A DNA stretch of 64,000 nucleotides from Auanema rhodensis (taxonomy: Eukaryota; Animalia; Nematoda): positions 7,192,001-7,256,000 of the forward strand of contig OZ059898.1 in the NCBI GenBank assembly GCA_964057225.1, written 5' to 3'. The notes beneath the pieces are model-generated. The model worked only from the letters and a program-made list of their open reading frames with translations. It ran no database searches and had not been told where the DNA came from. The first letter of the stretch is position 1. Each line of letters begins with the position of its first letter. A program made the position numbers and the translations under genes. Shown here piece by piece: positions 3,092 through 47,901 of this stretch.

Positions 3092-6000
3092 ATGAAGAAC
3101 CTCAATGATTTATATCCATCTACAACTAATTTTATTCTTCAATCTATATTAATATTCACATTCCTTTCCTCATTAGTATTATCGTAAGTTTTTATTTTAT
3201 TTTCATTCAATTGTCAGCCTTGTTTAACTTATTATCTTTTATTCGAAGCTTCATGAGATCAAGTTATTTACTTTATTTAAGCCTTAGATTTCGAACTTTC
3301 GTATATATTATATGACATAAGATAGTTCTGAAGAAAAATATCAATATATTAAAATTCCGAGAGATATAACATTAAATGGAGTTATAGCACACAATATTAT
3401 ACAATGGAGTTCAATTTGACCCAAGCTTGTAATAAATAGTATGTTTGATTCATAAAGTTGAAATCTCATCCTTTTTATTTTTTCTGATCTCTGATATTCA
3501 TATCCACTGCTAATTTTTTTCAACAACCATTAGTTTAAAAATCCAAATTTGGAGTGCAAAGTGACAGCCTTCATCAGAAGAAAAGCGATAGATCATTTTA
3601 GAACTTTATTTTTTTCCTTTATCATTCATCTAAGCGTTCGAACTTTAGCAAAACGAACATTTTTTTTTTATAAAAGTACACCATAAGGACATACATATAT
3701 GTATATAAATCCATGATAATTGAAGTGTTTAGTTCCTATTCTATGGATTGTTTTGAAAGTTTAAACAAAAAAGTCAAAAAGTCATTTTTTGTTAGTAAAA
3801 GCTTGAACTTGTGAGGCTGTTGTTGATAGTTTTCTTGTACGTTTAGTAAAAGGAAATTAATCCTAGAAGTCTTTTGGAACAACATGAAAATCAGATTTTT
3901 AAAGGAACCAAAAGAAACATGCAAATAAATATAATTTTTAAGATTGAAAAGTGATGCATTAAAACATCAAAATCCCATATATGATCGTTTGGCTAAAAAA
4001 GCTCTTCCTCTCAATAATCGACCTTCTGATAAGCCTTTGCGTGTTTATGTAGGATTTTTCGTTGAAAGTCTTGGAAACTTCCGCTCAACAGAAATGGTAA
4101 TTCACTTTAAGAGATATTAAAGTTCATTTCCCGTTTAATGGTGCTTTCATGCTTTAGACTTTTGATATGGATCTTTATATGTATATGAGTTGGTTAGATA
4201 TACGAATGGCTCATAACGAATCCGATTATGTACTTGTCAACGGTGAGCAAACAATTTTATTTTGAAAAATTGGAAATCTAGACAAACGAATAGAAAAATA
4301 ATGATGTCAGTTTTCCCAAGTGTCTTCTTTCATATGAGTTTTGAATTTTTTATTTCCTCCTTTAAAGATCTCGAAAAGACTATTATCAAAAAGAATAAAT
4401 TGACTAAAAACATTCTCAAAATTGAAGAATACGTAAAGAAAGCAATTTAAGATAAGCACTTTCTTGAGAACATGTGGTTACCTGATTTGTACTTTGCTAA
4501 TGCTCGTACAGCATACTTTCATGATGTAACGGTAAGCATAAAACTTTCTATTCTACAAAATAAAACAGAAATCTATGTTATTTATTCATCTTTTTAAGGT
4601 TCATAATTTCAATATGTTTATAGCCCCAGATGGTATGATTAGTTATGGAACACGTGTAACATTGAATTTAGGTAAATAAAATTTTAATAATTTATTTTGT
4701 ATTATTCTATATTTAGCATGTAATTTGGATTTAAAAGACTATCCACTTGATCGTCAAACATGTTTAGTGAAGATTATTAGTTGTAAGTTTTTTAATAAAT
4801 TTAAATATTTAATTTCATTTTTATTCGTAAGTTTCATGTCGTTTCTTCTCCTGTCTCGACTTATTGATTTACATTTAGTTTAAGACTATTTGTTCACTCG
4901 AATATTTATTTTTATCTTGATTATATTCCTGAAGTGATATGCCTCAGCATGTTGTGCTCCTCTAACTGCTCTTTGCTCATCTTAGTTGGTGATCTTAAAG
5001 AAACTGAATAATATAAAAAAACAGAGTGAAAAGAATTGTTTAGACATTTTTATTTAATCTTTAACAAAGAAATAAATATATATCGATTTCACAATACAAA
5101 CGAAATGCCGTTAGAAAATAGATTATACCCCTCTATGAAAATAGAACGATCATCTTAATACTTGTCATCAGCCAAGGTGAATAACGTATTTCATCAGTCT
5201 TCTCAAGCATTATAAATTTTCCTAGTTGTATTGAGCAAGAAAGTCATGCAGAATGGGAACAGAGGCAGTAGATTCACGAGCTAAAATTGAGCAAATGAAT
5301 TAAATGTTCTGTTCATAACTAGCAAACCCGTAACCAATAACTTAACTACTTATGTTTTATAAAAACTTATACCATTATTATTTAAAATAGTAATTAGGAA
5401 AAAGTACAGAAAGAAAAAAAGTTACGCAGAACTTTTAAATCCATTTCATTTACTCTGAAAAGAAGAAAGAAAATTGAATTTTCACTTCATGCATGAACGT
5501 GTGGACATGGATCTTTGTTAGATAATCCCACTCACGAATATATTCTTCAGAAAATTTTGATAGTCGTGTATTAGAAACGATAGAATATACTATAAAAAAA
5601 ACCAAAACTTTATTCAACGTTTTATGTATTTCATATTTAAAACCAGAAAGCGATATGAATAATTTTCTTATTTTTAATTGAAATACTTGAAGTACAGTGT
5701 TCTAATATAAAACTATTTCATATGGTCATGTGAAAACAGAAATGAATGCTACATGGTTCGAGGAAGGTTCTATACGATATAATCCTGATGTAAGATTTAT
5801 ACAAAATTATTTAAACAATAACCGTTATATAGATCAATCTCCCAGAATTTCATATCATGTCAATGGAAAATGATTATTGTGATGGAGTATTCCATTATAC
5901 CATTACTCATAATTCTTCCAGATTAGGTAAGATATTTTCAAAATTACAGTTTGTTCTGAATTCTATGCAATTGTTTTTCAATTTTATATCATTTTGATTT

Positions 6001-6843
6001 ATTTTCAGGTGATTTCTCTTGTCTGCTTGGAAAATTGAATCTGAATCGAGCTATTGGATTTCATCTTGTGCAGGTAGCAATCATTGTAAATTAATTTTCT
6101 ATATTTGTTATTGATAGAGTTATATTCCAACTGCTCTAATTGTTGCTATATCATGGGTGTCGTTCTGGATTGATCGTAGAGCTGTACCTGCTAGGGTTTC
6201 TCTTTCTTTTACAACGTTATTAACTTTAAGTACACAGGTATATAAATCGTTGTTTTCATGAAATTATTTTAATCTTCAGGGTAATGGTATACGCTATATG
6301 CTTCCAGCTGTCTCTTATGCAAAAGCTATAGACTATTTTTATGGAGGTCAGGAACATATTACCAAAATATTCATCAAGATTTCCTTATATTTGCAGTATG
6401 TATGTTGTTTATTTTCGGAGTTTTGTTGGAATTCGCATTAGTCAATAGTTACATGCGTAAAGCGAATAAATACAATAGTATGGCAGAAAAATTGCAAATG
6501 GGGACACATGGGCGAGTGATATACGGCAACTGTGAGTGAATAATTCTATAATTCGATATTTCTATTCTTTAGCTGGTGATTATGATTCGGAATATGAAGA
6601 AGGACCAACGAAATACTATCCACATGTAAGCAAGAGCTCTGCACATTTAATGTTCAAAGCTCTTCAATATTCACGGAGAGCCTTAGCTATTGACAAGGCA
6701 GCAAGATTTGCATTCCCTTGTTAGAACCTTTTTAAAATTAGAGTACTCATCCTATCCTTTCAGCAATATTTTTCTTATTCAATGTGCTATACTGGATGTA
6801 TTACCTACGTGAACCATATGAAAGCTTAAGTGGACGCCATTAA
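3092..6843 (+). CDS. Cys-loop ligand-gated chloride channel subunit (GGR-1/LGC-57-like group), multi-exon
   Basis: Signal peptide MKNLNDL..SSLVLS; [10 protein letters not shown]; Cys-loop [15 protein letters not shown] (~4718-4763); M1-M2 [40 protein letters not shown] with the PAR anion motif; M4 [19 protein letters not shown]; stop TAA at 6841-6843. Confidence 0.92.
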
Positions 6844-27132: not shown

Positions 27133-30100
27133 ATGGACTCTGAAGATACGGATCCGGTAATTTTTATAATATATTCAACCTTATTTTTAATTAAAAAATA
27201 GACTTCTCATGTACAATTGCCCAAAATTGAAAAACCACCCAGACCGAAATCAACAGATTCTGTTTTATTTCAAAGTTCTTACGATTACACAACACAAGAC
27301 AGGTAAGCTTTTCGTCTTTTTAAAATGTATTTTCTAGAGTTACCTCTGACGATGTTTCTTTTTTCTTATTTTTATAGAGGGAATCCAAGAAATGTAAGGC
27401 AACAGATGATTAGACCAAGAGATCAACTCAATTGGCTTACTGATCAGATAACTTTTGAAACTGAGAGTAGATCTATGTATCGTGCTGATAGCACAAAAAG
27501 ATTAGAAGATCAGTTCAAGTCTAGTACCGATGATTCAAACCCCAATTACTCATTAGGACCACGTTCTAACTACAACTCATGGAAAGGAGAAAGATTTCAA
27601 ATGAACAAGCCTAAGGATCAGATTGATCGATCCTCAGACCCTTTAGATGGAACAACTATCAATAGTTCTACATATCAAGGAAGAGCTGGAGAACGATATG
27701 AGATGAATAGACCGAAAGACCAATGGGAACGATCATCTGGCCCTATGGAAGGGACCACTATTAACCGTTCTACTTTTCAAGGTGGAATAGGAGAGCGATT
27801 TCAAATGAATAAACCGAAAGATCAGATTGATCGCTCGTCAGACCCTTTAGATGGAACAACTATCAATAGTTCCACGTATCAGGGAGGAGCCGGTGAGCGA
27901 TATGAGATGAATAGACCAAAGGACCAATGGGAACGAACATCTGGCCCAATGGAAGAGACCACTATTAACCGTTCTACTTTTCAAGGTGGAATAGGACAGC
28001 GATTTCAAATGAATAAACCGAAAGATCAGATTGATCGCTCGTCAGACCCTTTAGATGGAACAACTATCAATAGTTCTACATATCAAGGAGGAGCCGGTGA
28101 GCGATATGAGATGAATAGACCAAAGGACCAATGGGAACGAACATCTGGCCCAATGGAAGAGACCACTATTAACCGTTCTACTTTTCAAGGTGGAATAGGA
28201 GAGCGATTTCAAATGAATAAACCGAAAGATCAGATTGATCGATCCTCAGACCCTTTAGATGGAACAACTATCAATAGTTTTACATATCAAGGAGGAGCCG
28301 GTGAGCGATATGAGATGAATAGACCAAAGGACCAATGGGAACGATCATCTGGCCCAATGGAAGAGACTACTATTAACCGTTCTACTTTTCAAGGTGGAAT
28401 AGGACAGCGATTTCAAATGAATAAACCGAAAGATCAGATTGATCGCTCGTCAGACCCTTTAGATGGAACAACTATCAATAGTTCTACATATCAAGGAGGA
28501 GCCGGTGAACGATATGAGATGAATAGACCGAAAGACCAATGGGAACGGTCATCTGGCCCTATGGAAGGGACCACTATTAACCGTTCTACTTTTCAAGGTG
28601 GAATAGGACAGCGATTTCAAATGAATAAACCGAAAGATCAGATTGATCGATCCTCAGATCCTCTAGATGGAACAACTATCAATAGTTCTACATTTCAAGG
28701 AGGAGCCGGTGAACGATATGAGATGAATAGACCGAAAGACCAATGGGAACGGTCATCTGGCCCTATGGAAGGGACCACTATCAATAGTTCTACATATCAG
28801 GGAGGTGTTGGTGAACGGTACCAAGCGAACAAGCCTAAGGATCAGATTGATCGATCCTCAGACCCTTTAGATGGAACAACTATCAATAGTTCTACATTTC
28901 AAGGAGGAGCCGGTGAACGATATGAGATGAATAGACCGAAAGACCAATGGGAACGGTCATCTGGCCCTATGGAAGGGACCACTATTAACCGTTCTACTTT
29001 TCAAGGTGGAATAGGACAGCGATTTCAAATGAATAAACCGAAAGATCAGATTGATCGATCCTCAGACCCTCTAGATGGAACAACTATCAATAGTTCTACA
29101 TTTCAAGGAGGAGCCGGTGAACGATATGAGATGAATAGACCGAAAGACCAATGGGAACGGTCATCTGGCCCTATGGAAGGGACCACTATTAACCGTTCTA
29201 CTTTTCAAGGTGGAATAGGACAGCGATTTCAAATGAATAAACCGAAAGATCAGATTGATCGATCCTCAGATCCTCTAGATGGAACAACTATCAATAGTTC
29301 TACATATCAGGGAGGTGTTGGTGAACGGTACCAAGCGAACAAGCCTAAGGATCAGATTGATCGATCCTCAGACCCTTTAGATGGAACAACTATCAATAGT
29401 TCTACATTTCAAGGAGGAGCCGGTGAACGATATGAGATGAATAGACCGAAAGACCAATGGGAACGGTCATCTGGCCCTATGGAAGGGACCACTATTAACC
29501 GTTCTACTTTTCAAGGTGGAATAGGACAGCGATTTCAAATGAATAAACCGAAAGATCAGATTGATCGATCCTCAGATCCTCTAGATGGAACAACTATCAA
29601 TAGTTCTACATATCAGGGAGGTGTTGGTGAACGGTACCAAGCGAACAAGCCTAAGGATCAGATTGATCGATCCTCAGACCCTTTAGATGGAACAACTATC
29701 AATAGTTCCACGTATCAGGGAGGTGTTGGTGAACGGTACCAAGCGAACAAGCCTAAGGATCAGATTGATCGATCCTCAGACCCTTTAGATGGAACAACTA
29801 TCAATAGTTCTACATTTCAAGGAGGAGCCGGTGAACGATATGAGATGAATAGACCGAAAGACCAATGGGAACGGTCATCTGGCCCTATGGAAGGGACCAC
29901 TATTAACCGTTCTACTTTTCAAGGTGGAATAGGACAGCGATTTCAAATGAATAAACCGAAAGATCAGATTGATCGCTCGTCAGACCCTTTAGATGGAACA
30001 ACAATGAATCGATCAACTTATCAAGGAGGTGTTGGTGAACGGTACCAAGCGAATAAGCCTAAGGATCAGATTGATCGATCCTCAGACCCTTTAGATGGAA

Positions 30101-33100
30101 CAACTATCAATAGTTCCACGTATCAGGGAGGTGTTGGTGAACGGTACCAAGCGAACAAGCCTAAGGATCAGATTGATCGATCCTCAGACCCTTTAGATGG
30201 AACAACTATCAATAGTTCTACATTTCAAGGAGGAGCCGGTGAACGATATGAGATGAATAGACCGAAAGACCAATGGGAACGGTCATCTGGCCCTATGGAA
30301 GGGACCACTATTAACCGTTCTACTTTTCAAGGTGGAATAGGACAGCGATTTCAAATGAATAAACCGAAAGATCAGATTGATCGCTCGTCAGACCCTTTAG
30401 ATGGAACAACAATGAATCGATCAACTTATCAAGGAGGTGTTGGTGAACGGTACCAAGCGAATAAGCCTAAGGATCAGATTGATCGATCCTCAGACCCTTT
30501 AGATGGAACAACTATCAATAGTTCCACGTATCAGGGAGGTGTTGGTGAACGGTACCAAGCGAACAAGCCTAAGGATCAGATTGATCGATCCTCAGACCCT
30601 TTAGATGGAACAACTATCAATAGTTCTACATTTCAAGGAGGAGCCGGAGAACGATATGAGATGAATAGACCGAAAGACCAATGGGAACGGTCATCGGGCC
30701 CTATGGAAGGGACCACTATTAACCGTTCTACTTTTCAAGGTGGAATAGGACAGCGATTTCAAATGAATAAACCGAAAGATCAGATTGATCGATCCTCAGA
30801 CCCTCTAGATGGAACAACAATGAATCGATCAACTTATCAAGGAGGTGTTGGTGAACGGTACCAAGCGAACAAGCCTAAGGATCAGATTGATCGATCCTCA
30901 GACCCTTTAGATGGAACAACTATCAATAGTTCTACATTTCAAGGAGGAGCCGGTCAACGATATGAGATGATTAGACCGAAAGACCAATGGGAACGGTCAT
31001 CTGGTCCAATGGAAGGGACCACTATTAACCGTTCTACTTTTCAAGGTGGAATAGGACAGCGATTTCAAATGAATAAACCGAAAGATCAGATTGATCGATC
31101 CTTAGACCCTTTAGATGGAACAACTATCAATAGTTCCACGTATCAGGGAGGTGTTGGTGAACGGTACCAAGCGAACAAGCCTAAGGATCAGATTGATCGA
31201 TCCTCAGACCCTTTAGATGGAACAACTATCAATAGTTCCACGTATCAGGGAGGTGTTGGTGAACGGTACCAAGCGAACAAGCCTAAGGATCAGATTGATC
31301 GATCCTCAGACCCTTTAGATGGAACAACTATCAATAGTTCTACATATCAGGGAGGTGTTGGTGAACGGTACCAAGCGAACAAGCCTAAGGATCAGATTGA
31401 TCGATCCTCAGACCCTTTAGATGGAACAACTATCAATAGTTCTACATTTCAAGGAGGAGCCGGAGAACGATATGAGATGAATAGACCGAAAGACCAATGG
31501 GAACGATCATCTGGTCCAATGGAAGGGACCACTATTAACCGTTCTACTTTTCAAGGTGGAATAGGACAGCGATTTCAAATGAATAAACCGAAAGATCAGA
31601 TTGATCGATCCTCAGACCCTCTAGATGGAACAACTATCAATAGTTCCACGTATCAGGGAGGTGTTGGTGAACGGTACCAAGCGAACAAGCCTAAGGATCA
31701 GATTGATCGATCCTCAGACCCTTTAGATGGAACAACTATCAATAGTTCCACGTATCAGGGAGGTGTTGGTGAACGGTACCAAGCGAACAAGCCTAAGGAT
31801 CAGATTGATCGATCCTCAGACCCTTTAGATGGAACAACTATCAATAGTTCCACGTATCAGGGAGGTGTTGGTGAACGGTACCAAGCGAACAAGCCTAAGG
31901 ATCAGATTGGTCGATCCTCAGACCCTTTAGATGGAACAACTATCAATAGTTCTACATTTCAAGGAGGAGCCGGTGAACGATATGAGATGAATAGACCGAA
32001 AGACCAATGGGAACGGTCATCTGGCCCTATGGAAGGGACCACTATTAACCGTTCTACTTTTCAAGGTGGCATAGGTCAGCGATTTCAAATGAATAAACCG
32101 AAAGATCAGATTGATCGATCCTCAGACCCTTTAGATGGAACAACTATCAATAGTTCTACATTTCAAGGAGGAGCCGGTGAACGATATGAGATGAATAGAC
32201 CGAAAGACCAATGGGAACGGTCATCTGGCCCTATGGAAGGGACCACTATCAATAGTTCCACGTATCAGGGAGGTGTTGGTGAAAGGTACCAAGCGAATAA
32301 GCCTAAGGATCAGATTGATCTGTCCTCTGACCCTCTAGATGGAACAACAATGAATCGATCGACTTATCAGGGAGGTGTTGGAGAACGGTACCAAGCGAAC
32401 AAGCCTAAGGATCAGATTGATCGCTCGTCAGAACCTCTAGATGGAACCACCATCAATAGTTCTACGTATCAGGGAGGTGTTGGTGAAAGATATCAAGCGA
32501 ACAAGCCTAAGGATCAAATTAATCGTCCTTCTGATCCTCTAGATGGAACAACAATGAATCGATCGACTTATCAGGGAGGTGTTGGTGAACGGTACCAAGT
32601 GAACAAGCCTAAGGATCAGATTGATCGTCCTTCTGATCCTCTAGATGGAACCACCATCAATAGTTCTACATTTCAAGGAGGAGCCGGTGAACGATATGAG
32701 ATGAATAGACCAAAGGACCAATGGGAACGATCACCTGGCCCTATGGAAGGGACCACTATCAATAGTTCCACGTATCAGGGGGGTGTTGGAGAAAGGTACG
32801 AAGCGAATAAGCCTAAGGATCAGATTGATCGCTCGTCAGAACCTCTAGATGGAACAACAATGAATCGATCAACTTATCAAGGAGGTGTTGGAGAAAGGTA
32901 CCAAGCGAACAAGCCTAAGGACCAGATTGATCGCTCGTCAGACCCTCTAGATGGAACAACAATGAACCGATCAACTTATCAAGGAGGTGTTGGAGAAAGG
33001 TACCAAGCGAACAAGCCTAAGGACCAGATTGATCGCTCGTCAGATCCTCTAGATGGAACCACCATCAATAGTTCCACGTATCAGGGAGGTGTTGGTGAGA

Positions 33101-36100
33101 GGTACCAAGTGAACAAGCCTAAGGATCAAATTGATCGATCCTCAGACCCTCTAGATGGAACAACAATGAACCGATCAACTTATCAAGGAGGTGTTGGAGA
33201 AAGGTACCAAGCGAACAAGCCTAAGGACCAGATTGATCGCTCGTCAGACCCTCTAGATGGAACAACAATGAATCGATCAACTTATCAAGGAGGTGTTGGA
33301 GAAAGGTACCAAGCGAACAAGCCTAAGGACCAGATTGATCGCTCGTCAGATCCTCTAGATGGAACCACCATCAATAGTTCTACGTATCAGGGGGGTGTTG
33401 GTGAAAGATATCAAGCGAACAAGCCTAAGGATCAAATTAATCGTCCTTCTGATCCTCTAGATGGAACAACAATGAATCGATCGACTTATCAGGGAGGTGT
33501 TGGTGAACGGTACCAAGTGAACAAGCCTAAGGATCAGATTGATCGCTCGTCAGACCCTCTAGATGGAACAACAATGAATCGATCAACTTATCAAGGAGGT
33601 GTTGGAGAAAGGTACCAAGCGAACAAGCCTAAGGACCAGATTGATCGCTCGTCAGACCCTCTAGATGGAACAACAATGAACCGATCAACTTATCAAGGAG
33701 GTGTTGGAGAAAGGTACCAAGCGAACAAGCCTAAGGACCAGATTGATCGCTCGTCAGATCCTCTAGATGGAACCACCATCAATAGTTCCACGTATCAGGG
33801 AGGTGTTGGTGAGAGGTACCAAGTGAACAAGCCTAAGGATCAAATTGATCGATCCTCAGACCCTCTAGATGGAACAACAATGAACCGATCAACTTATCAA
33901 GGAGGTGTTGGAGAAAGGTACCAAACGAACAAGCCTAAGGACCAGATTGATCGCTCGTCAGATCCTCTAGATGGAACCACCATCAATAGTTCCACGTATC
34001 AGGGAGGTGTTGGTGAGAGGTACCAAGTGAACAAGCCTAAGGATCAAATTGATCGTCCTTCTGATCCTCTAGATGGAACCACCATCAATAGTTCCACGTA
34101 TCAGGGAGGTGTTGGTGAGAGGTACCAAGTGAACAAGCCTAAGGATCAAATTGATCGATCCTCAGACCCTCTAGATGGAACAACAATGAATCGATCGACT
34201 TATCAGGGAGGTGTTGGTGAACGGTACCAAGTGAACAAGCCTAAGGATCAAATTAATCGTCCTTCTGATCCTCTAGATGGAACAACAATGAACCGATCAA
34301 CTTATCAGGGAGGTGTTGGAGAAAGGTACCAAGCGAACAAGCCTAAGGACCAGATCGATCGCTCGTCAGATCCTCTAGATGGAACAACAATGAACCGATC
34401 AACTTATCAAGGAGGTGTTGGAGAAAGGTACCAAGCGAACAAGCCTAAGGACCAGATTGATCGCTCGTCAGATCCTCTAGATGGAACCACCATCAATAGT
34501 TCCACGTATCAGGGAGGTGTTGGTGAGAAGTACCAAGTGAACAAGCCTAAGGATCAAATTGATCGATCCTCAGACCCTCTAGATGGAACAACAATGAACC
34601 GATCAACTTATCAGGGAGGTGTTGGAGAAAGGTACCAAGCGAACAAGCCTAAGGACCAGATTGATCGCTCGTCAGATCCTCTAGATGGAACCACCATCAA
34701 TAGTTCCACGTATCAGGGAGGTGTTGGTGAGAGGTACCAAGTGAACAAGCCTAAGGATCAAATTGATCGTCCTTCTGATCCTCTAGATGGAACCACCATC
34801 AATAGTTCCACGTATCAGGGAGGTGTTGGTGAGAGGTACCAAGTGAACAAGCCTAAGGATCAAATTGATCGATCCTCAGACCCTCTAGATGGAACAACAA
34901 TGAATCGATCGACTTATCAGGGAGGTGTTGGTGAACGGTACCAAGTGAACAAGCCTAAGGATCAAATTAATCGTCCTTCTGATCCTCTAGATGGAACAAC
35001 AATGAACCGATCAACTTATCAGGGAGGTGTTGGAGAAAGGTACCAAGCGAACAAGCCTAAGGACCAGATCGATCGCTCGTCAGATCCTCTAGATGGAACA
35101 ACAATGAATCGATCGACTTATCAAGGAGGTGTTGGAGAAAGGTACCAAGCGAACAAGCCTAAGGACCAGATTGATCGATCCTCAGACCCTCTAGATGGAA
35201 CAACAATGAACCGATCAACTTATCAAGGAGGTGTTGGAGAAAGGTACCAAGCGAACAAGCCTAAGGACCAGATTGATCGCTCGTCAGATCCTCTAGATGG
35301 AACCACCATCAATAGTTCCACGTATCAGGGAGGTGTTGGTGAGAGGTACCAAGTGAACAAGCCTAAGGATCAAATTGATCGATCCTCAGACCCTCTAGAT
35401 GGAACAACAATGAACCGATCAACTTATCAGGGAGGTGTTGGAGAAAGGTACCAAGTGAACAAGCCTAAGGATCAGATTGATCGTCCTTCTGATCCTCTAG
35501 ATGGAACCACCATCAATAGTTCCACGTATCAGGGGGGTGTTGGAGAAAGGTACGAAGCGAATAAGCCTAAGGATCAGATTGATCGCTCGTCAGACCCTCT
35601 AGATGGAACAACAATGAATCGATCGACTTATCAGGGAGGTGTTGGTGAACGGTACCAAGTGAACAAGCCTAAGGATCAAATTAATCGTCCTTCTGATCCT
35701 CTAGATGGAACCACCATCAATAGTTCCACGTATCAGGGAGGTGTTGGTGAAAGGTACCAAGCGAACAAGCCTAAGGACCAGATTGATCGCTCGTCAGATC
35801 CTCTAGATGGAACCACCATCAATAGTTCCACGTATCAGGGAGGTGTTGGTGAACGGTACCAAGCGAACAAGCCTAAGGACCAGATTGATCGCTCGTCAGA
35901 TCCTCTAGATGGAACCACCATCAATAGTTCCACGTATCAGGGAGGTGTTGGAGAAAGGTACCAAGCGAACAAGCCTAAGGACCAGATCGATCGCTCGTCA
36001 GATCCTCTAGATGGAACAACAATGAACCGATCAACTTATCAAGGAGGTGTTGGAGAAAGGTACCAAGCGAACAAGCCTAAGGACCAGATTGATCGATCCT

Positions 36101-39100
36101 CAGACCCTCTAGATGGAACAACAATGAACCGATCAACTTATCAAGGAGGTGTTGGAGAAAGGTACCAAGCGAACAAGCCTAAGGACCAGATTGATCGCTC
36201 GTCAGATCCTCTAGATGGAACCACCATCAATAGTTCCACGTATCAGGGAGGTGTTGGTGAAAGGTACCAAGTGAACAAGCCTAAGGATCAGATTGATCGT
36301 CCTTCTGATCCTCTAGATGGAACCACCATCAATAGTTCCACGTATCAGGGAGGTGTTGGTGAACGGTACCAAGCGAACAAGCCTAAGGATCAGATTGATC
36401 GATCCTTAGACCCTCTAGATGGAACAACAATGAATCGATCAACTTATCAAGGAGGTGTTGGAGAAAGGTACCAAGCGAACAAGCCTATAGACCAGATTGA
36501 TCGCTCGTCAGACCCTCTAGATGGAACAACAATGAACCGATCAACTTATCAAGGAGGTGTTGGAGAAAGGTACCAAGCGAACAAGCCTAAGGACCAGATT
36601 GATCGCTCGTCAGATCCTCTAGATGGAACCACCATCAATAGTTCCACGTATCAGGGAGGTGTTGGTGAGAGGTACCAAGTGAACAAGCCTAAGGATCAGA
36701 TTGATCGTCCTTCTGATCCTCTAGATGGAACAACAATGAATCGATCGACTTATCAAGGAGGTGTTGGAGAAAGGTACCAAGCGAACAAGCCTAAGGACCA
36801 GATTGATCGCTCGTCAGATCCTCTAGATGGAACCACCATCAATAGTTCCACGTATCAGGGAGGTGTTGGTGAGAGGTACCAAGTGAACAAGCCTAAGGAT
36901 CAGATTGATCGTCCTTCTGATCCGTTAGATGGAACAACAATGAATCGATCGACTTATCAAGGAGGTGTTGGAGAAAGGTACCAAGCGAACAAGCCTAAGG
37001 ACCAGATTGATCGCTCGTCAGATCCTCTAGATGGAACCACCATCAATAGTTCCACGTATCAGGGAGGTGTTGGTGAGAGGTACCAAGTGAACAAGCCTAA
37101 GGATCAGATTGATCGTCCTTCTGATCCTCTAGATGGAACAACAATGAATCGATCGACTTATCAAGGAGGTGTTGGAGAAAGGTACCAAGCGAACAAGCCT
37201 AAGGACCAGATTGATCGTCCTTCTGATCCTTTAGATGGAACAACAATGAATCGATCGACTTATCAAGGAGGTGTTGGAGAAAGGTACCAAGCGAACAAGC
37301 CTAAGGATCAGATTGATCGTCCTTCTGATCCTCTAGATGGAACAACAATGAATCGATCGACTTATCAAGGAGGTGTTGGTGAAAGGTATCAAGCGAACAA
37401 GCCTAAGGACCAGATTGATCGCTCGTCAGACCCTCTAGATGGAACAACAATGAATCGATCGACTTATCAAGGAGGTGTTGGAGAAAGGTACCAAGCGAAC
37501 AAGCCTAAGGATCAGATTGATCGATCCTTAGACCCTCTAGATGGAACAACAATGAATCGATCAACTTATCAAGGAGGTGTTGGAGAAAGGTACCAAGCGA
37601 ACAAGCCTAAGGACCAGATTGATCGCTCGTCAGACCCTCTAGATGGAACAACAATGAATCGATCGACTTATCAGGGAGGTGTTGGAGAAAGGTACCAAGC
37701 GAACAAGCCTAAGGACCAGATTGATCGCTCGTCAGATCCTCTAGATGGAACCACCATCAATAGTTCCACGTATCAGGGAGGTGTTGGTGAGAGGTACCAA
37801 GTGAACAAGCCTAAGGATCAAATTGATCGATCCTCAGACCCTCTAGATGGAACCACCATCAATAGTTCCACGTATCAGGGAGGTGTTGGTGAACGGTATC
37901 AAGCGAATAAGCCTAAGGATCAAATTGATCGATCCTCAGACCCTCTAGATGGAACAACAATGAATCGATCGACTTATCAGGGAGGTGTTGGAGAAAGGTA
38001 CCAAGCGAACAAGCCTAAGGATCAGATTGATCGATCCTTAGACCCTCTAGATGGAACAACAATGAATCGATCAACTTATCAAGGAGGTGTTGGAGAAAGG
38101 TACCAAGCGAACAAGCCTAAGGACCAGATTGATCGCTCGTCAGACCCTCTAGATGGAACAACAATGAATCGATCGACTTATCAGGGAGGTGTTGGAGAAA
38201 GGTACCAAGCGAACAAGCCTAAGGACCAGATTGATCGCTCGTCAGATCCTCTAGATGGAACCACCATCAATAGTTCCACGTATCAGGGAGGTGTTGGTGA
38301 GAGGTACCAAGTGAACAAGCCTAAGGATCAAATTGATCGATCCTCAGACCCTCTAGATGGAACCACCATCAATAGTTCCACGTATCAGGGAGGTGTTGGT
38401 GAACGGTATCAAGCGAATAAGCCTAAGGATCAAATTGATCGATCCTCAGACCCTCTAGATGGAACAACAATGAATCGATCGACTTATCAGGGAGGTGTTG
38501 GAGAAAGGTACCAATTGAAGAAGCCTAAGGATCAGATTAATCGGCCGTTAGAACCTCTAGATGGAACAACAATGAATCGATCAACTTATCAAGGAGGTGT
38601 TGGAGAAAGGTACCAATTGAACAAGCCTAAGGATCAAATTGATCGTCCTTCTGATCCTCTAGATGGAACCACCATCAATAGTTCCACGTATCAGGGAGGT
38701 GTTGGTGAACGGTATCAAGCGAATAAGCCTAAGGATCAAATTGATCGATCCTCAGACCCTCTAGATGGAACAACAATGAATCGATCGACTTATCAGGGAG
38801 GTGTTGGAGAAAGGTACCAAGCGAACAAGCCTAAGGACCAGATCGATCGCTCGTCAGATCCTCTAGATGGAACAACAATGAATCGATCGACTTATCAAGG
38901 AGGTGTTGGAGAAAGGTACCAATTGAAGAAGCCTAAGGATCAGATTAATCGGCCGTTAGAACCTCTAGATGGAACCACCATCAATAGTTCCACGTATCAG
39001 GGAGGTGTTGGTGAGAGGTACCAAGTGAACAAGCCTAAGGATCAAATTGATCGATCCTCAGACCCTCTAGATGGAACAACGATGAATCGATCAACTTATC

Positions 39101-41226
39101 AAGGAGGTGTTGGAGAAAGGTACCAAGTAAACAAGCCTAAGGATCAGATTGATCGATCCTCAGATCCTCTAGATGGAACCACCATCAATAGTTCCACGTA
39201 TCAGGGAGGTGTTGGAGAAAGGTATCAAGCGAATAAGCCTAAGGATCAAATTGATCGATCCTCAGACCCTCTAGATGGAACCACCATCAATAGTTCCACG
39301 TATCAGGGAGGTGTTGGAGAAAGGTATCAAGCGAATAAGCCTAAGGATCAAATTGATCGATCCTCAGACCCTCTAGATGGAACCACCATCAATAGTTCCA
39401 CGTATCAGGGAGGTGTTGGAGAAAGGTATCAAGCGAATAAGCCTAAGGATCAAATTGATCGATCCTCAGACCCTCTAGATGGAACAACGATGAATCGATC
39501 AACTTATCAAGGAGGTGTTGGAGAAAGGTACCAAGTAAACAAGCCTAAGGATCAGATTGATCGATCCTCAGATCCTCTAGATGGAACCACCATCAATAGT
39601 TCCACGTATCAGGGAGGTGTTGGTGAGAGGTACCAAGTGAACAAGCCTAAGGATCAGATTGATCGATCCTCAGATCCTCTAGATGGAACCACCATCAATA
39701 GTTCCACGTATCAGGGAGGTGTTGGTGAAAGGTACCAATTGAACAAGCCTAAGGATCAGATTGATCGTCCTTCTGATCCTCTCGAAGGAACAACAATGAA
39801 TCGATCAACTTATCAAGGAGGTGTTGGAGAAAGGTACCAAGTGAACAAGCCTAAGGATCAAATTGATCGATCCTCAGACCCTCTAGATGGAACAACGATG
39901 AATCGATCGACTTATCAAGGAGGTGTTGGAGAAAGGTACCAAGTGAACAAGCCTAAGGATCAGATTGATCGTCCTTCTGATCCTCTCGAAGGAACAACAA
40001 TGAATCGATCAACTTATCAAGGAGGTGTTGGAGAAAGGTACCAAGTGAACAAGCCTAAGGATCAAATTGATCGATCCTCAGACCCTCTAGATGGAACAAC
40101 GATGAATCGATCGACTTATCAAGGAGGTGTTGGAGAAAGGTACCAAGTGAACAAGCCTAAGGATCAGATTGATCGTCCTTCTGATCCTCTCGAAGGAACA
40201 ACAATGAATCGGTCAACTTATCAAGGAGGTGTTGGAGAAAGGTACCAAGTGAACAAGCCTAAGGATCAGATTGATCGTCCTTCTGATCCTCTCGAAGGAA
40301 CAACAATGAATCGATCGACTTATCAAGGAGGTGTTGGAGAAAGGTACCAAGTGAACAAGCCTAAGGATCAGATTGATCGTCCTTCTGATCCTCTCGAAGG
40401 AACAACAATGAATCGGTCAACTTATCAAGGAGGTGTTGGAGAAAGGTACCAATTGAACAAGCCTAAGGATCAGATTGATCGTCCCTCTGATCCTCTAGAT
40501 GGAACAACGATGAATCGATCGACTTATCAAGGAGGTGTTGGAGAAAGGTACCAATTGAACAAGCCTAAGGATCAGATTGATCGTCCTTCTGATCCTCTAG
40601 ATGGAACAACAATGAATCGATCGACTTATCAAGGAGGTGTTGGAGAAAGGTACCAATTGAACAAGCCTAAGGATCAGATTGATCGTCCCTCTGATCCTCT
40701 AGATGGAACAACGATGAATCGATCGACTTATCAAGGAGGTGTTGGAGAAAGGTATCAAGTGAACAAGCCTAAGGATCAGATTGATCGTCCTTCTGATCCT
40801 CTAGATGGAACAACGATGAGTCGATCAACTTATCAAGGAGGTGTTGGTGAACGGTACCAAGTGAACAAGCGTAAGGATCAGATCGATCGTCCTTCTGATC
40901 CTCTAGAAGGAACCACAATGAATCGATCAACTTACCAAGGAGGTGTTGGAGAAAGGTATCAAGCGAAGAAGCCTAAGGATCAGATTGGTCGGCGGTCAGA
41001 CCCTCTAGATGGAACAACTATGAATCGATCGACTTATCAAGGAGGTGTTGGTGAACGATTTCCCACAATCAAACCAAAAGATCATATATCCGCTTTTGCT
41101 AGAATAAGTGAAGATAATGATATGATACCTTTGAAATATCGCCCTGCTAGAAATGTTCCGACAATACGAATAATATCGGCCGTTAAGAATAAAAGACATA
41201 TGGTTCAGACCTCAACTTTGTTTTGA
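27133..41226 (+). CDS. Giant (~4657 aa) 34-aa tandem-repeat protein, SAXO/STOP Mn-motif-like
   Basis: Exons 27133-27156, 27202-27302 and 27378-41226 splice in phase with canonical sites; the 13.8 kb last exon is open throughout; AATAAA near 41371. Confidence 0.85.
27586..41085 (+). repeat. Coding tandem array of 102-nt units, 132 full copies plus a partial copy
   Basis: First GER codon at 27586 and last at 41050; the difference 13464 equals 132 x 102. Consensus GERYQANKPKDQIDRSSDPLDGTT(I/M)N(S/R)STYQGGV. Confidence 0.97.
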
Positions 41227-46100: not shown

Positions 46101-47901
46101 AATTAAATTTATAGAGCAGCTGAAGTTTGGATGGATGATTGGAGACAGATGTTCTACAAACTATCACCACGTTAGTTATACGTAATATATTTAAAACAAA
46201 CTATATTTAGAAGCTGTAACAATGCGAAAAGATGCTGATGTGAGTAATCGAATTGAGCTGCGTAAGCGTTTGAGGTTTGTTCATTAATGATTTTTTTTTT
46301 GAAAAAAATAAAATATTAATACAATATTTATGATATTGTATATAAAATAATTTAATATTTATTTTCTAAAGATTTGGTTATAATCTAAAATAAATGAATA
46401 AGTTTGGTTATGAATGCCGTATGAATTATAAAATATATATTTAATTATATATATACTTATATACATATATATATTTATACAACTGATAAATCAATTATCT
46501 TTATAAAGTACTTTTAGTTAAAAACAAACTAATATTTAAAAAAAATTTTTTAAATTTAGATGCAAAGATTTCAAATGGTATTTGGACAATATATTCACGG
46601 ATCATTTCTATCCTATGCCAGGAGATTTTTTTGGACGGGTAAGAAACTATTCGAAAATGGTCTTTAATCGTTATTTTCGCAAAATAATTCAAAATGACCC
46701 CTTTATTCATTTCACATTTTGGAGAAAATCTTTTGGGTCTTCTAAAATAAAACTAAGTCATTTGCAGATTTCAAATGATGAACTAGGTAGTAATTCGACA
46801 GAAAACTGTCTGACATTGTCAGTTGAGGCATCAACTGGCCTAAGAAAAGCCAATTATTTGGAATGTCGGCTGACAAATAATTTTCCAAGAGAGCAGGTTG
46901 GGCTACGTACCATTATCGTACTTTTTCTTTCAAAATTCATCAATTTTAATAATAAATAATAAATAGATGATTGTATTCAAAAACAAGTTCTGATTAAAAA
47001 CTCGGTACGTAGCTCAAAATGCAAATTCTTAAAAGTTTCAATTTTTTTAATTTATGTTTTAAACCAATAACTCTTCAATGTTCAGAGTAGCTACGTATCG
47101 TGTTTTCAGATTCATAATGATGAATATTGCCTTGTAAGTCGTCCGGGTGATGCAGGCAATGTGAAGCAACATAAGCTTACAATTGGCCGATGTACACTTG
47201 GTTTTGACTTGTGGCAGGTGATCTTTTATTTTTTTTTTGAAGCAAAAAGATGTAAAATATAAAAAAATATGTTTTATTTAATTGAATTTAGTAAACATAG
47301 TATATTTTCATTATAGTTATGGTTGTTTACCAAAGATGGTCGTATACGATCTGACGAACATCTATGTCTATCAGCTACACAGATAGTTCATACAAATTCC
47401 CAATGGATGGTTCAATTGAAAGAATGCGCTGGTTATGAAGAAGAATATTGGACATATAGTCCAAAGGCATGTTCAAATATATATTTGAAAAATATTAAAA
47501 ATAAATTTAAAAAATGAATTTATACATTTATATGAATCCAAGTAATTTTTCTTTAAAACAGAAATAAAAATACTCTTTCATTAGAATATTTTATTTGTTA
47601 GAAAGCTTAGAAATATTTTTATTAACATAATTAAATTAAAAAATATTATTTTAGTACAAAACATTTGTACAAAAGAAAAGTGGACTTTGCCTCACACGAC
47701 CAGTAATTACATCAGTCACTGATATAAATTTGCCTTTGATTGTGAAATGTGGGAAGCCTTCACAGGTATAATAAACAAGTTTTTTATCTTATATAAGAAA
47801 AAATAATATCAAAAATCAATTTATATAAATATAATCTGTTTTTGTTTTAGCAATGGACTATGAAAACTGTTGCTTGGAGGCCTGAAAAGAGTCGTTCATA
47901 G
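43181..47901 (+). CDS. gly-6: Polypeptide N-acetylgalactosaminyltransferase with two alternative lectin alpha-subdomain exons
   Basis: Type II TM N-terminus; [11 protein letters not shown]; [21 protein letters not shown]; [10 protein letters not shown] (DxH); SPTMAGGLF; [11 protein letters not shown]; ricin domain [10 protein letters not shown]. These match recalled C. elegans GLY-6. Confidence 0.9.

Follow-up and report, generated by a model that had tools for sequence, protein, structure and literature searches.

The 64-kb stretch of Auanema rhodensis DNA analysed here (contig OZ059898.1; hereafter the window) carries on its + strand the nematode gly-6 orthologue, which encodes a polypeptide GalNAc-transferase. 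Between two homologous, in-frame exons of this gene, A and B, lies an intron in which one central element is complementary both to the start of the intron, over the exon A 5′ splice site, and to its end, over the exon B 3′ splice site. We consider it probable that these three elements form a masking switch that prevents removal of the A–B intron, and hence the joining of A to B. An earlier interpretation made from the sequence alone (the sequence-only reading) had proposed a two-state repressive switch that enforces exclusion, and the predicted fold, conservation and covariation support that proposal. What the switch would block, however, is removal of the A–B intron, and so double inclusion, rather than either exon as such.

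The two helices compete for a single strand. Helix 1 joins site 1 to the central element through 14 consecutive base pairs, one of them G-U, which cover positions +2 to +15 of the exon A 5′ splice site, exactly as the sequence-only reading had described. In helix 2, 12 bp with one G-U (47089–47100 with 47003–47014) are followed by a U.U mismatch at 47101/47002 and by five further pairs (47102–47106 with 46997–47001). These pair counts also agree with the earlier description, as do all its coordinates. In this register helix 2 spans positions −21 to −4 of the exon B acceptor, so that the U-tract (UUUU included) lies inside the paired stretch and the AG outside it. In an alternative register, UCAG (47106–47109) pairs with CUGA (46990–46993). 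The core at 47003/4–47014 (GGUACGUAGCU) is common to both helices, whilst AAAACUC (46997–47003) is private to helix 2 and CAA (47015–47017) to helix 1. Only one stem can form at a time, as had been proposed, and the overlapping footprints are those of the competing-RNA-structure class. Calculated duplex energies are −28.9 kcal/mol for helix 1, −25.5 kcal/mol for helix 2 and −10.6 kcal/mol for site 1 with site 2. U1 pairs with donor positions −3 to +6, and UUUUCAG is the sequence read by nematode U2AF; the helices take in both footprints.

Chance is excluded as the source of these complementarities. With one mismatch or none, the 11-mer core occurs three times in 64 kb, each time within the A–B intron (expected 0.23), and none of 100 shuffled sequences reached three occurrences. 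Helices 1 and 2 were the sole result when the whole window was searched exhaustively for ungapped stems of at least 12 bp, with at most one G-U, at least six G-C pairs and a loop of at most 300 nt. The three TACGTA hexamers within 213 nt have a Poisson probability of approximately 8e-6 at the window's own density. An origin from a miniature inverted-repeat transposable element or other transposon was considered and rejected, there being no other copy in the 64-kb window. Two metagenome scans gave 0 matches, one with site 2 joined to the beginning of exon B, the other with the core, a gap and site 2.

Folding predictions describe an RNA with two states. The minimum free energy structure of 46880–47125 contains helix 2, and in each of three sequence contexts 0.99 of the base-pair probability falls to helices 1 and 2 together, split between them as 0.24/0.75, 0.17/0.82 and 0.70/0.30. 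When each state was forced, the ensemble energies lay 0.2–1.1 kcal/mol apart. The bistability that had been suggested from the sequence is therefore reproduced by the fold, with two nearly isoenergetic states that together fill the predicted ensemble. In the closest relative, Auanema sp. JU1783, the fold gives 0.79 helix 1 or 0.95 helix 2, depending on context, and the duplexes have energies of −18.2 kcal/mol (helix 1) and −16.2 kcal/mol (helix 2). The helices are stability-matched in both species despite an absolute difference of approximately 10 kcal/mol, as would be expected if selection had acted on their balance.

The elements are conserved where little else in the intron is. In Auanema sp. 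JU1783 (locus L001), exon A′ occupies 6409–6534, the intron 6535–6702 (168 nt) and exon B′ 6703–6810. Of 42 fourfold sites, 19 (45%) are identical between the two species, where 0.28 would be expected at random. When the three introns of the cluster are compared, exact matches of 7 nt or more with a G or C in them are limited to TACGTAC(C), at site 1; AAAACTC and GTACGTAGC, the two parts of the core, at L001 6620–6636; and CGTGTTTTCAG, at site 2. The remainder of the A–B intron is unalignable and the loops are unconserved. In the flanking introns A/T runs alone are shared, and no conserved or complementary elements were found there. Auanema sp. JU1783 has a fourth TACGTA, within exon A′ (CCUACGUAAAG, L001 6481–6490, in GLRK codons), which is 90% complementary to the core and may be an extra competitor for it, or incidental; the window uses AGA for the corresponding Arg codon and lacks this hexamer.

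Substitutions in helix 1 preserve pairing. Two pairs have changed on both sides, 46900/47015 from G-C to C-G and 46911/47004 from C-G to A-U, and the G.U at 46901/47014 has become G-C; all three core-side substitutions retain pairing, whilst one more change in site 1 yields an A.G mismatch in Auanema sp. JU1783. RNAalifold, given the two-sequence alignment, picks helix 1 with its covariations. The check for covariation in an orthologous intron that the sequence-only reading had called for thus finds all three elements kept and two compensatory changes, through helix 1 and in two species. Helix 2 in Auanema sp. JU1783 retains both its U.U mismatch and its inner arm, AAAAC(U)C with G(U)GUUUU; one G.U has become G-C and there is an extra G-C at the inner end.

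Several observations count against a two-state switch, and those on helix 2 are the first. It shows no double compensatory change, and in Auanema sp. JU1783 its three outer pairs are lost and one inner pair has become U.C. The covariation is drawn from two species only, those with the long intron, and the dominant predicted helix flips with the length of flanking sequence folded. The annotation of Auanema sp. JU1783 has the B form only. Lastly, the switch leaves unexplained why at least one exon is always included, and would not prevent double skipping.

The erosion of helix 2 and the restriction of every compensatory change to helix 1 would be expected if helix 1 alone were functional, as a hairpin that hides the weak exon A donor and sets the A/B ratio, with the complementarity to the exon B acceptor a by-product of the repeat that does not enforce exclusion. 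Helix 1 is also transcribed first and is the more stable of the two in both species. Models for such a hairpin are hnRNP A1 exon 7B and tau exon 10. Against it, the private arm of helix 2, AAAACUC, is an exact block in the middle of the intron for which no other reason is evident, the two helices are matched in energy in both species, and an active A donor should splice to an unmasked consensus B acceptor. We judge a function of helix 1 alone to be unlikely.

A second concern is the palindrome TACGTA, which lies at the conserved centre of each of the three elements, reads alike in all of them and is their invariant part in both species. Conservation by itself would equally fit three protein-binding sites for UACGUA whose pairing is incidental. 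This reading has difficulty with the covariation, which, like the conservation, extends beyond the hexamer: at 46900/47015 and 46911/47004 both partners have changed with complementarity retained. The helix 2 arm, AAAACUC with GUGUUUU, likewise lies outside the hexamer, and ACGUA-type motifs are absent from a catalogue of conserved nematode intronic splicing elements (PMC1500816). Three protein sites are, in our estimation, distinctly improbable.

Two further explanations were considered. The intron is short in every outgroup, and its ends carry sites 1 and 2 as direct repeats (GCTACGTAYC). These could be a relic of intron enlargement: a target-site-like duplication around an insertion with an inverted copy, kept by descent and functionless. 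We give this little credence, as neutral sites are near saturation and the remaining intron is unalignable, so that exact 9- and 11-nt blocks would not survive without selection; nor is there a further copy of the element in the window, and an insertion origin would in any case be compatible with a present function. Slightly less credible still is another RNA-level role, in which the intron houses a substrate for processing or editing, or else a structured non-coding RNA. The stability and conservation of the helices speak for it, but no Rfam family reached threshold in 46700–47400 (best 20.5 bits, against a gathering score of 85), the loops are unconserved and the partner sites coincide exactly with splice signals.

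By their coding signatures, exons A and B are both under protein-level constraint: identity to Auanema sp. JU1783 at the three codon positions is 0.67/0.83/0.48 for exon A and 0.83/0.92/0.67 for exon B. Exon A′ shares 25 of 42 residues with exon A, with a single 3-nt indel and no stops, and exon B, the version found in most annotated orthologues, is 81% identical to its counterpart. Both exons open with I(S/H)NDE and contain two cysteines, and in each the QxW motif is completed by the LW that opens the next constitutive exon (47317–47466); on these features they are two versions of the first (alpha) lectin repeat. The lectin fold has three repeats, and A and B occupy one and the same alpha-repeat slot. 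Amongst annotated or assembled orthologues some are of B type, some are of A type and some gene models contain both, whilst two Logan transcript-derived proteins from other rhabditids, of different species, contain B only (P0155) or A only (P0185). Exclusive use of A or B in A. rhodensis is suggested by the C. elegans orthologue, by three-repeat lectin logic and by these transcripts of other worms, each with one exon. The lectin logic, together with the precise aim of the masking at the ends of the A–B intron, makes it improbable that A and B are both constitutive. The acceptor and first 15 nt of the two exons (46761–46782 and 47103–47124) have 82% DNA identity in A. rhodensis and are dissimilar in Auanema sp. 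JU1783, which could reflect local gene conversion or chance.

The intron itself sets the two Auanema species apart from other nematodes. We retrieved ten gly-6 loci and sought the exon pair in each, taking the C. elegans value from the literature. The intervening intron measures 11 nt in C. elegans (PMC4165533), 14 nt in Mesorhabditis spiculigera, 17 nt in Toxocara canis, 18 nt in Mesorhabditis belari, 28 nt in Dirofilaria immitis, 33 nt in Aphelenchoides besseyi, 41 nt in Ancylostoma duodenale and in Trichinella sp. T9 and 43 nt in Haemonchus contortus, as against 168 nt in Auanema sp. JU1783 and 213 nt in A. rhodensis. The short-intron species span clades I, III, IV and V, and TACGTA occurs in none of the short introns examined. 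In a tree of 25 proteins the window is sister to Auanema sp. JU1783 (support 100/99), inside Rhabditina, and given this placement the long intron is the derived state, acquired in the Auanema lineage. In Ancylostoma (L004 8340–8380), Haemonchus (L006 4804–4846) and Trichinella (L009 approximately 3775–3815), the intron of 41–43 nt is at the reported minimal spliceable size, and the Haemonchus and Trichinella gene models remove it and include both exons. In Pristionchus entomophagus (L005 6715–6890) a 51-nt intron is all that separates the upstream exon from B, with no A-type exon present; the A-type exon may have been lost in its lineage.

The C. elegans pair, gly-6 exons 8a (108 nt) and 8b (105 nt), has been shown by experiment to be used in a mutually exclusive manner (Kuroyanagi et al. 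2014, PMC4165533). According to these authors the 11-nt intron between them makes double inclusion physically impossible, as C. elegans introns shorter than approximately 40 nt are not excised; the same steric class includes egl-15, let-2, bet-2 and gly-5 exons 9b/9c, and all of its clusters have exons whose lengths are multiples of three (PMC4165533). The A. rhodensis exons (129 and 108 nt) are likewise multiples of three, both in phase 0-0, so that joining them shifts no frame. The A–B intron in both Auanema species is far longer than the steric limit. Neither nonsense-mediated decay (NMD) nor intron size can therefore police the choice between A and B here. Size, frame and spliceosome type would not stop the A donor from joining a consensus B acceptor 213 nt downstream; structure could.

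We suggest the following mechanism. The exon A donor, CAG/GUUGGG, is weak (GUUCGG in Auanema sp. JU1783), whilst the exon B acceptor, GUUUUCAG/A, is a perfect nematode consensus in both species. With the core on the first 15 bases of the intron, the donor would be hidden from U1; with the core on the last 20 or so bases, the U-tract of exon B would be hidden from U2AF. Because the helices share 11–12 bases, one end of the intron would always be hidden, and because removal needs both ends whilst the core always occupies one, the intron could not be removed as a unit, nor A joined to B. Were U1 to take the weak donor first, the core would be free to close the B acceptor, and A would be spliced to the downstream constitutive exon. 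Were helix 1, which is transcribed first, to form early, the A donor would be lost and the strong B acceptor left free, and the upstream exon would join B. Toeholds for strand displacement between the two states could be provided by the stretches of the core that are private to one helix, AAAACUC for site 2 and CAA for site 1. The switch would in this way take over the role of the steric lock found in other nematodes. More tentatively, though as a serious possibility, we suggest that the steric lock was lost in the Auanema lineage as the intron grew to approximately 170–210 nt, and was replaced by an RNA lock in which U1 occupancy is transmitted to the B acceptor by strand exchange.

The gene name given in the sequence-only reading was right: the best relatives of the locus are named gly-6 (Pristionchus) or CBN-GLY-6 (C. 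brenneri). In a representative search with the stop-free catalytic piece, one full-length protein (P0027) alone aligned over the whole locus; its relatives are nematode GLY-6 orthologues, the closest being P0153 of Auanema sp. JU1783, with 87% identity over clean exon columns. The upstream piece matches Pfam Glycos_transf_2, and the gene combines the GT2 catalytic domain with the C-terminal ricin-B lectin domain that characterize the GLY-6 orthogroup. Unannotated relatives were also searched at the protein level with the downstream exon (66 aa) for exon-sized open reading frames (ORFs), and no candidates emerged. The coordinates of the exons and RNA elements are listed in Table 1.

Table 1. 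Exons and RNA elements of the gly-6 cluster (window coordinates)
Feature	Position	Strand	Description
Constitutive upstream exon (...FFGR)	46560–46638	+	End of the catalytic unit, ends in phase 0; from translation; 85% identity to Auanema sp. JU1783 L001 6262–6339
Exon A	46768–46896	+	43 codons (129 nt), phase 0-0; upstream alternative lectin alpha repeat; matches position of C. elegans gly-6 exon 8a
A–B intron	46897–47109	+	213 nt, 27% G+C; donor GT at 46897–98
Site 1 (UUGGGCUACGUACC)	46898–46911	+	Exon A 5′ splice site, +2 to +15; pairs with 47004–47017
Central element	46997–47017	+	Pairs with site 1 or site 2
Site 2 (AGCUACGUAUCGUGUUUUCAG)	47089–47109	+	Exon B U-tract and 3′ splice site; 47089–47106 pair with 46997–47014
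Exon B	47110–47217	+	36 codons (108 nt), phase 0-0; downstream alternative lectin alpha repeat; corresponds to C. elegans exon 8b
Constitutive downstream exon	47317–47466	+	Lectin beta repeat; Pfam Ricin_B_lectin profile positions 39–87; 84% identity to Auanema sp. JU1783

The surrounding region is AT-rich (27% G+C). The intron that follows the beta-repeat exon seems to begin with GC rather than GU (AAG/GCAUGU, 47464–47472), a junction required both by the frame into the next exon (47655 onwards) and by AGA/GUAAGU at the same codon in Auanema sp. JU1783; it is probably a GC-AG intron. Immediately upstream of gly-6, on the same strand, lies an ORF of 4633 codons with repeats of approximately 34 residues (27325–41226), the first 492 residues of which match Pfam SAXO1-2 and DUF7485.

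Mutually exclusive splicing in nematodes has so far been explained by RNA-binding proteins, by introns that are too short, or by NMD. If our proposal is correct, gly-6 would provide the first RNA-structure-based mechanism reported for nematode mutually exclusive exons, as well as a natural handover between two unrelated exclusion mechanisms at one locus: the same exon pair is under steric control in C. elegans and probably in eight other retrieved species, and is apparently RNA-locked in one lineage. It would thus offer a comparative system in which to ask how a splicing constraint persists once its physical basis has been lost. The layout, with a central strand that masks both intron ends in turn, is the simplest conceivable design for an unspliceable unit, and lends itself to a genome-wide search. 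With approximately 120 nt between its outer arms the element is small, and Auanema species are culturable, making disruptive and compensatory editing feasible.

Our literature search found no paper on RNA structure at gly-6, nor on a docking/selector or competing-structure mechanism in nematodes. The sequence-only reading likewise knew of no description for this gene, but the kind of mechanism, repressive masking, is not new, having already been proven in human ATE1 (PMC7797038). There, element R3 pairs with either R1 or R4 around exons 7a and 7b, so that one or the other of two 3′ splice sites is hidden; this was established by antisense blocking as well as by disruptive and compensatory mutations, and the isoform ratio tracks the energy difference (Kalinina et al. 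2020, PMC7797038). ATE1 and gly-6 are alike in that one conserved element in the intron between homologous exons can pair with either of two similar sequences, each overlapping a splice signal (+2 to +15 and −21 to −4 at gly-6), and in that pairing hides a splice site and does not activate one. They differ in layout. In ATE1 it is the 3′ splice site preceding each exon that is masked, and the R1-R3 helix loops out exon 7a; in gly-6 the masked sites are the A donor and the B acceptor, which bound a single intron, there is no looping out of an exon, and the duplicated selectors upstream of each alternative exon are missing. ATE1 also has a second, 30-kb module (R2-R5), to which nothing comparable was found at gly-6, and its mechanism is proven by mutagenesis, whereas the gly-6 case is computational. 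The duplication model of Ivanov and Pervouchine (PMC6071210) does not fit directly, because sites 1 and 2 are not in equivalent positions relative to the exons; as a speculation, these direct repeats might instead go back to the event that enlarged the intron.

The steric lock on C. elegans gly-6 exons 8a and 8b concerns the same gene and the same pair of exons, both multiples of three in length, and serves the same need, that the intron between them is not removed. The C. elegans lock is an 11-nt intron without room, whereas that of A. rhodensis would be RNA pairing within 213 nt.

Docking/selector systems of the Dscam type, reportedly also described by Graveley 2005 and Yang et al. 2011, resemble gly-6 in another respect. 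In insect Dscam exon 6, 14-3-3xi and srp, competing and exclusive intronic pairings, conserved with covariation, choose amongst tandem homologous exons (PMC4691838). These pairings activate the exon adjacent to the selector, either by bringing splice sites together or by relieving repression (Yue et al. 2016, PMC4691838). Their docking sites lie in flanking introns with helices off the splice sites, whereas the gly-6 elements are all inside the A–B intron and on splice signals; the flanking introns of gly-6 hold no conserved block that could act as an activating docking site or selector. Single duplexes that lie over a 5′ splice site or polypyrimidine tract and lower its use are familiar from the CE6IO duplex at hnRNP A1 exon 7B, from tau exon 10 and from chicken beta-tropomyosin exon 6B. 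Those hairpins are one-state repressors, whereas in gly-6 one strand is common to two duplexes, and so couples both sites.

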